Assembly (NCBI RefSeq): GCF_000315625.1
Contig: NW_005434639.1
Span: 195,511 to 259,510, forward strand
Reading direction: 5' to 3'
DNA from: Guillardia theta CCMP2712
Lineage: Eukaryota; Protista; Cryptophyta
DNA length: 64,000 bases
Each line of letters opens with the position of its first letter. Within the stretch, counting starts at the first letter, position 1. Position numbers and translations under genes: made by a program. Under the pieces are notes generated by a model that did no database searches, was not told the DNA's origin, and saw only the letters and a program-made list of their open reading frames with translations. Shown here piece after piece: positions 18,501 through 25,300 of the stretch.

Positions 18501-19007
18501 TCAACCCTGAGCCGACAAGTATCTCTTTATCTCCTCGTCCTCCGCCAAGTCCGCCGCGCTCTTGTCGCCGCGGTATGTCTTCGCATGCTTGTTTGCTTTC
18601 ATCTTCTCCACAAGGATCCTCACAACCTCCATGTCCCCTCGCATCGCCGCGAGCATCAGAGGAGTGTAGCGGTCCCTGCCGACAGTGAAGTTCACGTCCG
18701 GCTTGTTGGCGAACTCGCTCATCCACTCCTCCAGCCTCTGCAGGCTTCGGGTGAGAATGGCGACGAGCAGAGCTTTGCGACGCTCTTTCTCTGCATGAGT
18801 GATGCTCGTTTTTGGTGATCTTGACGATCTTTGAACAATCCGTTCTATGACGCATGTTACTCGGGAAGCACTCAGAGCAAGGATCGATTGCAGACCTTGT
18901 CCTAGAAAGATGATATCATCAAGCACATCTCCCAAATTTTCGGGCATACGTTCCGCTTGCATTAGGAGCACTGCGATCTCCGTGACATCAGTTGAATCGT
19001 TCGCCAT
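18501..19007 (-). CDS. Small ankyrin-repeat protein, copy B
   Basis: Same ankyrin region as copy A (18510-18796 vs 17142-17428) with a different N-terminus (MANDSTDV...) and a probable 45-nt in-frame intron. Confidence 0.78.
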   Translation of the reverse strand: MANDSTDVTEIAVLLMQAERMPENLGDVLDDIIFLGQGLQSILALSASRVTCVIERIVQRSSRSPKTSITHAEKERRKALLVAILTRSLQRLEEWMSEFANKPDVNFTVGRDRYTPLMLAAMRGDMEVVRILVEKMKANKHAKTYRGDKSAADLAEDEEIKRYLSAQG

Positions 19008-19254
19008 CCCCGCTGCTTGACGCGGCAAGCTGAGACCATAAATCAGTTTGTCAGTGGTTTCCCGTAGGTTGCACAGCAAGGATGCAGACATCTTCCTTGA
19101 CTCATCACTGTTCTACTCACTAGCACGAAAGAAGAACAGGTCTAGCTCACAGAACGAGTCAGGACGGATCACATGGGTTGCTCTGGACACCAGTCCGTCT
19201 GCAAAAGGTGAATGATCTAAGTGCCTTGAATGGATCTCTGGCAGGCAGAGAGGA

Positions 19255-19393
19255 GAGGAGGGAGGTGAGTGAGTGAGTGAGTGAGGGAGGGAGGGAGGGA
19301 GTGAGTGAAGGGGGGAGGGAGGGAGGGAGTGAGTGAGTGAGGGAGGGAGGGGAGGGAGTGAAGGGGGGAGGGAGGGAGGGAGGGAGGGAGGGA
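19255..19393. repeat. (GAGG/GAGT)n compound microsatellite, intergenic
   Basis: Runs of gagt and ggga units seen directly. Confidence 0.85.
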
Positions 19394-19815
19394 GTTGAGT
19401 GTTGAGCTGGGAGGCTCTGATTTGCTGCCTTTGCTAGGAAGAGGAGGGAGGGCATATAGGGCATAGGGGTTTACTTTACTGCCCCGCGATACGATCGAGA
19501 TTGAACCTTGGGGCCGACTCTAGCCTCTTATTTACTCAGTAAAGTAGGCTTTGAACCCTTGTAAACTTTATCTGTGTTTGCGTGCTCGCCTGTTTCGGCA
19601 GTATCGCTCTCGTATGGGTCTTACCGTCCTCCTCGCAGGGGCCTTGCGCTACTGCTCTTTGTCCTGATCCTTGTTCCCCTGCTTGAGTCGTGCATGCCGT
19701 CGCCGGGCTTGCCGCGTGTTTGGAGTAGCGGTTTTCGCTGCTTCCTTCATTTCCTAGTGTTTCATTGAGGCGGGTTTGTAGGGTTTATCCTCGTCCTCCT
19801 TTGTTTACTCCACAG

Positions 19816-22004
19816 CTATATGAAGGCGTCAGGGTCGAGCCCTCCCAGCGTCGCCCTTGCGCTAATGGCCTTGTGCTGCAAGTCAACTCCGATGAAGTCT
19901 GCGGATCAAGTCAGCATGACGACGCGAACAACATAGCGGCAGGGCATCACCGAAGAAACTCTCCATGCTCCTCTCCTTGCCGACTCCGTACACGCCGTCC
20001 AGGCCCTGGCAGTGGGATCTCAGAGAGGAGGGGGAGGGATGGAGGGGAGGTTACCTGCATGGGCGAGACCTGTGCCTCCTCGAAGTCGCAGTCCCACGAG
20101 TTTCTGTTCTGGAAGAAGGAGTGCAGCTGGTAGCAGTTGTAGTGCAGACTTAGTTTGTCTGTTGCTTCCTTCGGAGGAGCTTCGGGACGAGCTCGTTGCC
20201 CCGAGGGTCCGTTCCGCACTGTCTCCTCTCCCTCCCCCATCCTCAAGATCGACCGAGCCCGCAGGAGGGATCGGGAGCGGAGGTCGAAGGGGTCGGCGAC
20301 CTCCTTGAAGCTCGACCTGTAGCTCCGATCCCAGCAGTGGAACACGACAGGGTGGCAGGGCGCGAAAACGTCGAACCCCCGCGTCCACATGCGGGCTAGC
20401 ATGGTCAGCTCCTCCCCGAAGAAGAGAAACTTCATCGAGGGATCGTAGGGAACTTCCAGCAAAAGCTCACTTGTGGAGAAGGAGCACCCAGCTGCCCAGA
20501 ACAGGCTCACCCGAGGAGCCGCCGGCCTCTGCCTCAGCATCTTCCCAGCTATCCGCAGCATGCCTTCCTCGCCGAACTGAGATGCGCACAACAGGGTGCT
20601 GGGAGACTGCTGGGGGACGGGATGGTCCCTGTCGTATCCGGGAGGATACGTGCTGAGCACTGGCTTAGGGCTCGGGCACGAGCCCAGCTGGGAGATGAGG
20701 TATTCATCCCACCCCTCAGCGAACCGCATGTGGGAGTCGATCTGGAGGTAGTACTTCTCCCCTGCCCAGAGCCTCTGTGCGAGGTACCTTGCCCAGCACG
20801 GACCTCTTGCTTCCTTCCAGTGGAACCGGGTCTCCCGCACGTTCTCCTCGCATCCTTCCGGCAGGTCACCCTCATGCAAGAAGCAGTCCTCGTCATCCTG
20901 GAAGTCGACCTGCGAGATCAGCCCCACATGCACCCTCTTGGGCAGCTTGGCTTTCTGGAACAGATCTCGCACGGTCTTGGGGCACTCGGGGTCCCTGTAG
21001 GCGACGATCGAGACGAAGATCTCCTCCGGCCTTGCCTCCTCCTCCTCTCGTCTTGCTGCGAAGGCCTGACAGCTCTCCAAGAACGAGCTGGGGCCGTACA
21101 GCCATCCTGATATGGCGAACCTCTCACTCGCGCACGGCAAGACCTCATGCTCCATGTCGGGCAGGAAGAGGAGGAGCCGATCGCACAGAGGAGCGACGTC
21201 GACGAGCCCTTCCTTGGGGTGGTACAGCCGCAGGACGCCCCCGTGCTCTTCACGCCATCCTTCCGCTACACGTCAGGCGTGAGGGGAGGCAGAACAGAGT
21301 TACCCGGGTTGAAGTAGTAGATGCAAGTCAGTCGACGACCAGCGTTGGTCTCGCTCACGTCAGAGTGCCGCACGTAGCAGGCGCCCTGCGCGTACCGGGC
21401 GAGCTGGAACGTGGCCTTCTCGCACGTGAAGGTCTGCGATAACGCGGTTACCAGGGAGTCCCGCGCACTGACGATGGAGTCTGACACTGCCTGGAGGGAG
21501 AGTGAGGGACGGAAGTCATGAAGGAGCGCACAAACCTCCATGCAGGAGATGCTCCGCGTCAGAGCCTCGTCACTCAGGTCGCCCGACAGCTTCCTCTCCA
21601 GAAGCGAGCTCATCCATATGATCTCGTCCCCTCGCGCGCGGACGTCCGTCCATGCAGTCGAGTCCTTACCCATCCCAGCTCTTCTCATCAGACCTGCTCG
21701 GAAGATGTTCTGCGCTGCCCCCCGCGCGCCTTCAGCCTGATCCCTCCCCAGGAAGCCGTCGAACACAGCGAACCCTCTCTCCCTAACCATCTTGATCGCA
21801 GACTCGGCGTCGAACGTGTTGGAAGTCGCTTCCAAGAAGCTGCGGTCTGCCTTCTCTGTTCCATCCTGGGACCCCCCTGTATCGAGAGCTCAATGGGTTC
21901 ACCTCAAGTCCAGCTCTACCTGCGAGGGACCGGAAAGTCCCGTCGTCCAGCAAGGAAAGCACCTTGAGCTGGAGGTGCTGGGGCAGCTGACCCAGCCCGC
22001 TCAT
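19816..22004 (-). CDS. Fusion protein: F-box-like motif + EGLN/PhyA-type 2OG-Fe(II) prolyl 4-hydroxylase + GT60 Gnt1-type hydroxyproline GlcNAc-transferase
   Basis: Six exons splice in frame: MSGLGQLPQHLQLKVLSLLDDGTFRSLAG|...GFAVFDGFLG...RGDEIIWM...ARY...YVRHSD...RRLTCIYYFNP|(G)WREEHGGVLRL...DRLLLF..MEHEVLP..RFAISGW, continuing in the same exon into IFVSIVAYRDPEC...GPCWARY...LQIDSHMRF..WD..VLSTYPP..LFWAAG..VPYDP..LFFGEE..RMWTRG...|GLDGVYGVGKERS|FIGVD...GGLDPDAFI*. Confidence 0.9.
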
Positions 22005-22344
22005 CCGAAACTCTTCTTCCTCTGCACCTGCTCTATGGCGTCTCAGCACGCAACATTGTTCCTCTGTCTTCTGATCTACAAGATTGCTCTCTCTTCCTCC
22101 CCCCGCCTCCCTCCCGCCCCTCACAGCATTGCTGGTCCCTGTCTCCCCGATGAAATAACGGGCGTAACGAGCGGAAAAGTCCACAAGCGGCATGCTCAGT
22201 CGGTAGTTCGCTTGACTCAGAGGCAGCAGGGGGATGAGGACTGGAAGCTCGTCCTCGTCCTCGTCCTCGTCCTCTTCCTCTTCTTCGTCCTCCGACACGT
22301 CCTCGTCCTCCGACACGTCCTCAACCTCGTCCTCCGACACCTCC

Positions 22345-25300
22345 ATGTCCACGTCCTCCACGCCCACGTCCTCCTCATCCTCGATTCTCCTCGTCCTCCT
22401 TGTCCTCTTGTTCCCCTTTTCTTCGCTATGCTCAAACACAAGCTCTTCGAGCCTCATTCCTCGAAAGTCAGGAAGCTGCATGCTGGAAGGGCGCTGCGAG
22501 AAGAACAAGCAGGAAAGGGCGCTCTACCAGGACAATGATGAAGGGCGTTTGAGGAGAAATTCTGCATGCCATGCTGAGAGCTGCGGGAGGAGAGCAAGGG
22601 ATCAGCACATTTGGTGCGAAAACCACCCCGACAACGCAGTTCACGCTCACTTCACGAGGGACAAGGTAGCAGCAACGGAGAGCTTCCCCAAGTTCCACGT
22701 TGAGAGGCGGGATGACGTGAGTGCAGACAAGATCGGCAAGAAGAGCACGAGCACGGAAGACCATGTGTCCTCTGACGAGTGCCATCCGAGCTACGAGATC
22801 GCTAACTCGTCGACATGGCTGGAGATCATGTGCGCAGACGGCAGCCAAGGATGGCAGTGGAGGGAAGACAGGGAATGTAAGGGGTTGCACCATGTGTTCT
22901 TCCAGGCGCTTGAGGACGTCTCAGTCTACTTCTGCCATGTCTCCGGCAAGACGCTCGGGTTGTCCGACGACAGCATGTACACGATCAAAGTGTTCAAGGG
23001 AAGCTTGTCGATCCTGTCGTTCTCCACTCAAGAGGATTGCGAGGTCATGCAGAAGAACGGACTGCACGTGTGGTATGGTGGCAATCCAGAAGAAATGTCG
23101 ATCAAGCCATGCGGAAGCTCCGGCGAACTGGAGGGGATCTTGAAGCAGAGGGCATGTTGTCTGCATGAAGCGTCGGAGCACGAGTACGTGTACGATCGCA
23201 GAATAGAGAGCAGCGGCAGTCGGATGAACTTCACATGGAGGGCATGCCTGTTTGAATGCCAACAGGACAGAGACACCTCAAGTCTCGATCGCTCAAGTTT
23301 GGTTCAGAGGTCGTTCGTGGAGACGCTGGACGACATAACCGACAGGATAACCGACGGCATGTCCGGTGCTTACCTGAGATTCCTGCCAGAGGATGTGTGG
23401 GAGGCTTATCAAGGTCTTTGCTAATCAGAAGTTGTCGGGCTAATTTTCTTTTCAGTATCGTTGGAGTCAGGAGGTCGGAATGACAGCCGGGCGGAATTTT
23501 TCCGCGAGTATGCTCAATCGCTCTTACTGACGGGTGCGACAGACAGCGTCCCCCGGACACGTCCCTAACGATGTGCTCTGTAGGAGAGGGGATCATGAAG
23601 GCCGTTCCTGGCTTCGACTCGTCTTGGAAGTGCCTCTGTCCTCCCAACAGGCTTTTCGAACGATTGCCGCTGCCAAAATGCTGCCGTCTGCCCTCCTTGG
23701 GAGATGTCAAGTTTGCATCTGCTCAGGAACATGCATAGGACGCTACTGTGCTCGTGCTGATAGGTTTGGAGCAGGCGGAAGAGACGTTGGCCATGATTCA
23801 GTCTATATCTCTTGGACAGAGGGCTGCCGACACAGGAGAGATCACTCACGACTTCCAGTATGCCTTCCACGCGATGGGAGCAGCTGCGATATTTGACGAC
23901 GACCGTCTTATGCGATTCTTGTGCTTCGTGCGGCAACGAGGTCCCAGCTTGTTCATCGGCCCTCCGGATGTGCAATTGTACATTAAGCACCTCCTCGTGG
24001 GCCCGGGTTGTACCTTCCTTCCGATCCAGCGAGGTGACGTCATCAACTCTCAAACTCTAGCCGACATCCACCAAGAGGCCATGCGGGTGCTGATGCTGAA
24101 GTCCAAGGACAGCGGGAGCGAGCTGAGGGCGCAGGTGGTGGTCATTCATGCAGGGTCTGCGACCCCAGTCCTGCAGAAGCGAATCTTGTCGTCTAGTCAG
24201 GCTGCACAGCTCAAGGTCTTCTCCATCGACTTGAGCGAGATGGTTCAAACCTTAGGGTTCGACAACCTGGACCTGGACACCTCTGGAGCTGGCTTCTCCT
24301 CCTCCTCCTCCTCCCTGGTGCAAGAGACAGGGATCAAGTCCCAGGACCTCCTCAACCAACTCTCCATCGCTACCAAGACCCGCCGAAAGATTCGTTTCCT
24401 CGTCACCACGGCGCTGGTCACTGGGGAGGATGACAGGTGGAGCCGGCAGGAGCTGTACAGGGGGACGTTCAAAGCTCTTGCTCGCCTCGGGTATCCCGAT
24501 CCTCTAATAGTCGAGGCCGTTCATGGAGGGGAGTCTCGGAGCTTCTTAGAAGGCTATGGGCACGTGGTCTACACCGACCTCAACGACTTTGAGAACCAGG
24601 GCAACAACGAGGGCAGGTCGATGCTGCTGGCGCTTCAGACTTGGGATGTGAAAGATGATGTGATGGTGAGCGGAAGCAATCAAGATGCTTTTCTTTTCTC
24701 CTTTCTCCTCCGCCTTCTCTCCCCCTCCATCCTCCTTCGCTTCTTCCGAACTTCCTGCTCGCTGCTCACTCTTTCCCCTTCCTGTCCTCCTCCCCATGCT
24801 CCCACTCTCCTCCCTGACAGAGGAACTAGGTCATCAAGCTCACGGGTCGATACTCCCCCGCTGATCGCAGACTCGTTCAGGTTCATCGTGACGCTCTTGT
24901 GCATGCACGTTGACCCGTCGTCTTCCGTAGCTCGTGGAGCTCAACACCCATCAGGACGCGATCGTCAGGGTCCGCAACGTCTCAAGAAGCGATCCTAACT
25001 TTGACTCCTAAGTCCAGGTCTCCATGAACGACGGGTTGATGTTCACCGGCTGCTTTGCGATGAGGAAAGGGCTCCTGCAGGAGGCTCTCAGCGCGATGGA
25101 CTGGAACCAATACGAGTAGTCCAGCTCCTCCTCCCACCAGCCGATGCTAACCACTTGTCTCCTACAGATCGCACGGAGTTCATCTTGAGTGGGCGATGTG
25201 ATCGTTTTCTCTCCCGTTCCGACGGTCCTCCTGACTTGTCAACAGGGTCCACAGACTCCGTCAGATCTGCGAACCGGACGATTGGCTGCTCGAGAGGACA

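Follow-up and report, generated by a model that had tools for sequence, protein, structure and literature searches.

The stretch of DNA analysed here, referred to as the window, comprises 64,000 nucleotides (nt) of the nuclear genome of the cryptophyte Guillardia theta CCMP2712 (contig NW_005434639.1, positions 195,511 to 259,510, forward strand). It contains a minus-strand gene of six exons, which extends from 22004 to 19816 of the window and encodes a protein of 651 amino acids (aa). The protein combines a predicted prolyl 4-hydroxylase of the PhyA type with a predicted N-acetylglucosamine (GlcNAc) transferase of the Gnt1 type, a member of glycosyltransferase family GT60. Transcript evidence confirmed that this fused gene is real and expressed, and that one mRNA spans both domains. 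The features of the gene are as follows, with the evidence given in brackets.

19816..22004, minus strand: whole coding region, six exons (transcript splice joints; 100% match to the public protein GUITHDRAFT_71355 over the shared part)
22005..22091, minus strand: 5′ untranslated region (5′-UTR) as far as the contigs extend (contig ends at 22034 in runs X1 and X6 and at 22091 in run X2)
21920..22004, minus strand: exon 1, with the start codon and a conserved N-terminal motif (transcript joints)
21948..21986, minus strand: conserved N-terminal motif LPQHLQLKVLSLL, residues 7–19 (comparison with relatives)
21877..21919, minus strand: intron 1, 43 nt, GT..AG (joint in three runs)
21536..21876, minus strand: exon 2, disordered N-terminal stretch and N-terminal helices of the hydroxylase, including RGDEIIW (transcript joints)
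21491..21535, minus strand: intron 2, 45 nt, in frame (joint in three runs)
21304..21490, minus strand: exon 3, first half of the double-stranded beta-helix with H184-x-D186 (codons 21367–21365 and 21361–21359)
21260..21303, minus strand: intron 3, 44 nt, GT..AG, between FNPG and WREEHGG (joint in three runs)
20055..21259, minus strand: exon 4, second half of the hydroxylase (His242 at 21149–21147, Arg251 at 21122–21120, last residue Y259 at 21098–21096), linker (21095–21021), and the larger part of the GT60 domain (first residue I285 at 21020, D379/H381 at 20738–20730) (continuous open reading frame, Pfam)
20006..20054, minus strand: intron 4, 49 nt (transcript joints)
19951..20005, minus strand: exon 5, a mini-exon of 55 nt (transcript joints; the encoded segment aligns with relatives)
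19899..19950, minus strand: intron 5, 52 nt (transcript joints)
19816..19898, minus strand: exon 6, conserved C-terminal GT60 segment FIGVDL...GGLDPDAF and stop codon
19656..19815, minus strand: 3′-UTR, at least to the end of the contig from run X1 (transcript contig)

The exon-intron structure was obtained by mapping transcripts to positions 19600–22700. Assembled contigs of X1, X2, and X6, three runs from different studies that probably represent RNA, were used together with the raw RNA run X19. All five introns were absent from the contigs of all three runs, and the removed parts were uniformly of the GT..AG type, on the minus strand, and 43–52 nt long. Because they lack the introns, the contigs derive from spliced RNA. 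A single contig of 2149 nt (run X1, 22034 to 19656) covered the entire coding sequence. The joined exons form a coding sequence of 1956 nt for the 651 aa, with the ATG at 22004 and a TAG stop codon at 19818–19816. As the contigs are spliced and both domains lie in one exon and one reading frame, the presence of a single mRNA and a single polypeptide is supported.

The initial annotation of this region had proposed that the C-terminal half of the hydroxylase runs into the transferase with neither intron nor stop, and this is the content of the single exon 21259..20055. It had also expected that the rest of the hydroxylase is spliced on in frame, that one transcript spans both domains, and that the coding region occupies 19816–22004; the joints at introns 2 and 3, the 2149-nt spliced contig (22034..19656), and the exact positions of the stop and start codons of the RNA-supported coding sequence agree with all three. 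The motifs that it had quoted for both domains were all found on the minus strand, in one reading frame after intron removal. The statement that the GT60 domain is complete within that run had to be modified: most of the domain is encoded by exon 4, but its last ~45 residues, including the conserved GVD...GGL..F segment, come from two further small exons. A splice model built from the sequence alone, with a 73-nt intron 1 and a single last intron of 156 nt, was overturned by the RNA joints.

The open reading frame (ORF) at 19947–21155 (minus strand) is 100% identical to GUITHDRAFT_71355 (EKX45392.1, UniRef L1JAR2), which is labelled as a hypothetical protein in the databases. The public model of 599 aa starts at an internal methionine (21790), so that exon 1 and 30 codons at the beginning of exon 2 are lacking. 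In addition, intron 2 (45 nt, 21535..21491) is retained as 15 extra residues, and the model runs through introns 4 and 5, which results in a false C-terminus. No in-frame ATG exists upstream of 22004 in the 5′-UTR, and the translation of 22005–22094 is devoid of methionine. The relatives begin 1–10 residues ahead of the same N-terminal motif, which fits a start at 22004, and the NPGW junction across intron 3 is conserved in homologues. As the RNA-based N-terminus and C-terminus (FIGVDL...GGLDPDAF) both align with homologues, the new gene model is supported, and it will be useful to anyone expressing the enzyme.

Both domains were recognized by Pfam in the public protein, as the initial annotation had anticipated: 2OG-FeII_Oxy_3 (PF13640) with 68 bits (E = 1.5e-18, cut-off 27) and GlcNAc (PF11397) with 230 bits (E = 6.7e-68, cut-off 21). 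These E-values are far beyond chance. To distinguish between the PhyA and the EGLN type, the scores of the hydroxylase against solved structures were compared. The closest solved relative was 6T8M (E = 1.3e-20), which aligned over the whole domain (query residues 3–217) and represents residues 60–284 of PhyA, the Skp1 prolyl hydroxylase of Dictyostelium (PMC7864055). The animal enzymes EGLN1–3 (PHD1–3) have the same 2-oxoglutarate/Fe(II) fold and the same HxD...H...R residues, but they matched only in the C-terminal half (E ~1e-15, query residues 134–218), they act on HIF-alpha, and they carry no glycosyltransferase. The Fe ligands H184, D186, and H242 and the 2-oxoglutarate-binding R251 are intact and aligned to the respective residues of 6T8M. 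The motifs are located at residues 110–116 (RGDEIIW), 181–186 (YVRHSD), 194–206 (RRLTCIYYFNPGW), 240–246 (MEHEVLP), and 250–257 (ERFAISGW). The alignment stops at Y259, the equivalent of the C-terminal tyrosine and last residue of Dictyostelium PhyA, the fold of which was reported to end at strand beta-VIII without a C-terminal helix (PMC7864055). The linker SFLESCQAFAARREEEE that follows Y259 could be helical. The scores and the aligned catalytic residues support the assignment of the N-terminal domain as a PhyA-type prolyl 4-hydroxylase.

The linker has a length of ~25 residues and is mostly acidic. It is followed by the GT60 domain from I285, the point at which the anchor-less GT60 proteins of Dictyostelium start. 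The motifs YRDPEC (within 285–297), IDSH (within 377–384), and FFGEE (484–488) are present, the D-x-H motif (D379/H381) is intact, and QIDSH (377–381) was found in all homologues inspected. A search by sequence for a solved structure related to this part found none. Neither a signal peptide nor a transmembrane segment was predicted; the highest Kyte–Doolittle value of any 19-residue window is 1.14, and the N-terminus is not hydrophobic, in agreement with the initial view that a signal peptide is lacking. A six-frame search of the whole assembly did not reveal a second GT60 locus.

For the phylogenetic placement, a quick maximum-likelihood tree of 95 GT60 domains was calculated. The G. theta domain grouped with three marine metagenome proteins with 99% support in the Shimodaira–Hasegawa-like approximate likelihood ratio test (SH-aLRT). 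It was placed inside a eukaryotic clade of fused proteins and anchor-less GT60 proteins of Dictyostelium, apart from the bacterial clade. The placement next to the Dictyostelium anchor-less proteins is compatible with the proposed kinship with cytosolic enzymes of the Gnt1 type; Golgi enzymes of the Gnt2 type lay outside the sequence set. The cytosolic GT60 proteins of Dictyostelium are ~42% identical to the G. theta protein in the GT60 core. Golgi enzymes such as Dictyostelium Gnt2 and the Trypanosoma cruzi pp-alpha-GlcNAcT belong to the same CAZy family and the same Pfam family (PF11397). As type II membrane proteins, they have a signal anchor, and they modify serine or threonine in the secretory pathway (see also PMC6939170), whereas the G. 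theta protein has no hydrophobic segment, and its GT60 domain is located behind a cytosolic hydroxylase. In summary, the motifs and the absence of an anchor support a Gnt1-type GT60 GlcNAc-transferase as the C-terminal domain, and the tree is compatible with it.

Many bacterial proteins of ~515–540 aa, from Alphaproteobacteria, Rhodospirillales, and Noviherbaspirillum, pair an S-adenosylmethionine-dependent methyltransferase with a GT60 domain (PF11397). Those from Alphaproteobacteria and Noviherbaspirillum are 42–46% identical over part of the query, but their partner domain is a different one (PF13649 and related), and the GT60 tree sets them apart, with good support, as a clade of their own.

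The combination of PF13640 and PF11397 is not restricted to G. theta. A database search revealed the same architecture in oomycetes (Achlya, Saprolegnia, Phytophthora, and Thraustotheca), and it was also found in green algae (Coccomyxa), a xanthophyte (Tribonema), a diatom (Chaetoceros), and many metagenomic proteins. The G. theta protein is collinear from end to end with the fused proteins of oomycetes, Coccomyxa, and the diatom. BLASTP aligned its residues 55–650 with residues 76–636 of the Phytophthora protein (35% identity, E = 1e-104), and the identity to the Achlya protein was 40% (E = 4e-109).

The nearest relatives of the GT60 domain stem from Tara Oceans and JGI metagenomes, in which GT60 had been called as a separate ORF. 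On two of these contigs (L013:1-2477 and L016:2157-5336), the GT60 ORF is immediately preceded, in the same orientation, by an ORF for a PhyA-like hydroxylase. The two ORFs of L013 would be connected in frame by splicing out a GT..AG intron, and in L016 the frame is open from ...EHEVL...SGWIYR into the linker motif CCPELLLRDMPDLN. The motif CCPELLLR(E/D)MPDLN follows the hydroxylase in both contigs. As the upstream ORF is on the same strand and the frames are joinable or open, the organisms behind these two contigs very probably carry the fusion as well, with a linker that is longer and of low complexity. The matches to the hydroxylase of such a relative were bacterial SM-20-like proteins and short ORFs from metagenomes; a named PhyA was not among them, but the search provided sequences for the comparison of the N-terminal motif.

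A dual-function enzyme of the PhyA-Gnt1 type has been characterized in Pythium ultimum, according to the title of van der Wel et al. 2019 as cited in PMC8724618. According to further papers, Skp1 of P. ultimum is hydroxylated by such an enzyme, and fusions of enzyme pairs of this pathway were reviewed as being frequent in protists (PMC8724618). The initial annotation had cautioned that pathway fusions might already have been noted, and this was correct: the P. ultimum enzyme and the review precede the present case, and the architecture is common in the databases. A literature search on Guillardia, Skp1, and prolyl retrieved no paper that names Guillardia in this context. It is already in the literature that the two enzymes occur in fused form, that the fusion probably serves processive processing, and that it is widespread; the G. 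theta protein is a further example. Both the P. ultimum and the G. theta enzymes have the same domain order, a PhyA-type hydroxylase followed by GT60, and like P. ultimum, G. theta has Skp1 isoforms (two paralogues) with the target proline. They differ in that G. theta is a photosynthetic cryptophyte of another supergroup, the enzyme of which is predicted from genome and transcript sequences. The two catalytic domains, their key residues, and the Skp1 target motif are also shared with PhyA and Gnt1 of Dictyostelium and PHYa and GNT1 of Toxoplasma gondii. In these species, however, the domains reside on two separate polypeptides, whereas in G. theta they form one chain with a link of ~25 residues.

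The presumed substrate Skp1 is encoded in the G. theta genome. The last exon of the Skp1 gene (contig C5) ends with ...FNIPNDFTPEEEEEVRKENAWCEE and retains the target proline in NDFTPEEEE, as the initial annotation had required of a host Skp1. The G. theta proline aligns with Glu147 of human SKP1, and the position corresponds to Pro143 in Dictyostelium and Pro154 in Toxoplasma (PMC7864055). A second, divergent Skp1-like gene with several exons (contig C10:706032-706233) also retains the target proline (...KDYTPEEVEEV). Its C-terminus FNIRKDYTPEEVEEVKRAHPWIYDK has kept the TPEE site and has lost the usual RKENxWCEE ending.

Based on orthology with the enzymes of Dictyostelium, Toxoplasma, and Pythium, the gene very likely encodes a cytosolic dual enzyme of 651 aa, which would act on Skp1 with a PhyA-type hydroxylase and a Gnt1-type transferase. 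In the first step, the conserved proline of the Skp1 C-terminal region (NDFT-P-EEEE) would be the target of the O2- and 2-oxoglutarate-dependent hydroxylase. In the second step, the GT60 domain, as a UDP-GlcNAc:hydroxyproline GlcNAc-transferase, would add an alpha-GlcNAc to this hydroxyproline. Skp1, and hence the assembly of SCF ubiquitin ligases, would thereby become sensitive to the supply of O2 and 2-oxoglutarate. The initial annotation had placed both steps in one enzyme. One mRNA and one ORF for a PhyA-type hydroxylase followed by a Gnt1-type GT60 were indeed found; the two activities, Skp1 as their substrate, a processive hand-over, and the physiological role would follow by analogy with the known enzymes. 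The same applies to the substrate channelling and the O2 sensing through SCF that it had proposed, which may operate in G. theta.

Several observations weigh against this reading. That the contig runs represent RNA was only presumed, and it is the spliced form of the contigs that speaks for RNA. Zero reads of the raw run X19, of which ~6% was sampled, mapped to the gene; all reads fell on stretches of low complexity, and therefore strand, transcript ends, and expression level could not be derived from X19. The GT60 tree was calculated without Golgi references of the Gnt2 type, and its Dictyostelium sequences bear no functional names. Arabidopsis SKP1 also has the target proline, although land plants have reportedly lost the pathway (bioRxiv 10.1101/764241), and the proline is thus necessary, but not sufficient. 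Lastly, searches with GT8 yielded no confident candidate for the downstream enzymes PgtA, Glt1/Gat1, or AgtA, and PgtA itself was not searched for. The genome contains six GT8 loci that resemble glycogenin or Gat1, and a seventh GT8 match is a UGGT. For one locus (C45:196468-197010), the best PDB match was Gat1 of Pythium (6MW5), an alpha-galactosyltransferase of Skp1, but the match was weak (E = 2.5e-8), and the remaining five lean towards glycogenin. A fusion of GT32 and GT8 was not seen in the GT8 searches of the genome.

The lack of confident matches for the downstream Skp1 glycosyltransferases, with PgtA left aside in the searches, would also be compatible with a different substrate. The fused protein could be real, but one or both of its domains could have targets other than Skp1: the hydroxylase could, for instance, modify another cytosolic protein, and the GT60 domain could glycosylate the resulting hydroxyproline or, like the Golgi GT60 enzymes, serine or threonine. 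Substrates of the PHD family are indeed varied, including HIF-alpha, EF-Tu, and Skp1 (PMC7864055). We regard this as unlikely: the hydroxylase is nearest to Dictyostelium PhyA over its full length, and the target proline is kept in both Skp1 paralogues. Moreover, the GT60 domain, of which a second locus was not found in the genome, is part of the same chain as the PhyA domain, and a P. ultimum enzyme of the same architecture modifies Skp1 isoforms, as far as the title cited in PMC8724618 tells.

The single chain could also exist at the mRNA level only, if two separate proteins arose in the cell from an internal start, an alternative transcript, or cleavage of the linker. An in-frame methionine (M240 in MEHEVLP) is indeed present, the linker is exposed, the gene is split into two or three pieces in the assemblies of X2 and X6, and minor isoforms may be hidden behind assembled contigs. 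Nevertheless, a split into two proteins appears very unlikely. The break would fall within a single exon and a continuous ORF, one contig spans everything, and M240 is located inside the hydroxylase fold, so that a start at this site would not yield a clean Gnt1. In addition, the collinear fusion is kept in distant lineages and the order of hydroxylase and GT60 in the nearest metagenomic relatives, which argues for selection on the fused form. That the fusion is an artefact of assembly or annotation, joining two neighbouring genes, is effectively refuted: the public gene model does have two false ends and an unremoved intron, but the second half of the hydroxylase and GT60 share one exon without a stop, and the spliced contigs of three independent studies agree. 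The reading as one dual enzyme for Skp1 is retained here.

The N-terminus of the enzyme has a conservation of its own. Exon 1 encodes LPQHLQLKVLSLLDDG, and an extended motif through LDDG is kept, apart from a single L/M substitution, in six cryptophyte-like metagenomic relatives (P0128 and P0130-P0134). The fused proteins of Coccomyxa and oomycetes begin with a less strict version, L-P/S-x-x-L/V-x-x-x-I/V-x-S-L-L; the oomycete type is LSPQLQALVEASLG, in contrast to the cryptophyte type LPQHLQLKVLSLLDDG of G. theta. Diatom proteins share a different N-terminal motif, RSWTP.TT..L......VLDH. The motif of G. theta resembles the first helix of an F-box. Pfam detected an F-box-like domain in exon 1 with E = 0.16, which is not significant, and it found no F-box in the six relatives or in the N-termini that were tried from Coccomyxa, oomycetes, and metagenomes; an identity as F-box thus has no Pfam support. 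The prediction of a complex of Dictyostelium Skp1A with the 35-residue translation of 22004..21900, which consists of exon 1 and seven intron-encoded residues, reached 0.26, compared to a mark of 0.34, a value that counts neither for nor against an interaction. In our estimate, it is improbable that the motif is a truncated F-box-like docking helix, by which the enzyme would be tethered to Skp1 at its F-box-binding groove or to a different component of SCF.

Additional features were noticed in the neighbourhood of the gene. A GAG/GAC-rich acidic repeat (serine-rich on the other strand) is located at 22200–22303; its very high contig depth comes from elsewhere in the transcriptome, and it breaks contigs. 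Another transcript contig begins at 22257 and extends to the right, and positions 22096–22199 have no RNA coverage. This contig and the gap fit a divergently transcribed neighbour (ORF 22234..23424, plus strand) with a shared promoter region of ~165 nt. On the downstream side, an ORF at 18501–19091 (minus strand) encodes an ankyrin-repeat-like sequence (…TPLMLAAMRGDMEVVRILVE…), and a Ser/Leu/Pro-rich repeat of low complexity is found at 19159–19464 on the minus strand.

Taken together, the G. theta fusion leaves the existing knowledge of the pathway unchanged. The N-terminal motif is the sole lead that is possibly new. If it were a docking helix, the enzyme would keep hold of Skp1 during both the hydroxylation and the subsequent glycosylation of its disordered C-terminal tail, and the processivity, so far only a matter of speculation for these fusions, would have its mechanism within the enzyme itself. 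With the dual enzyme, the characterized O2-sensing module of protists, hydroxylation of Skp1 followed by addition of GlcNAc, would be extended to a cryptophyte, an alga with a secondary plastid that makes its own oxygen.

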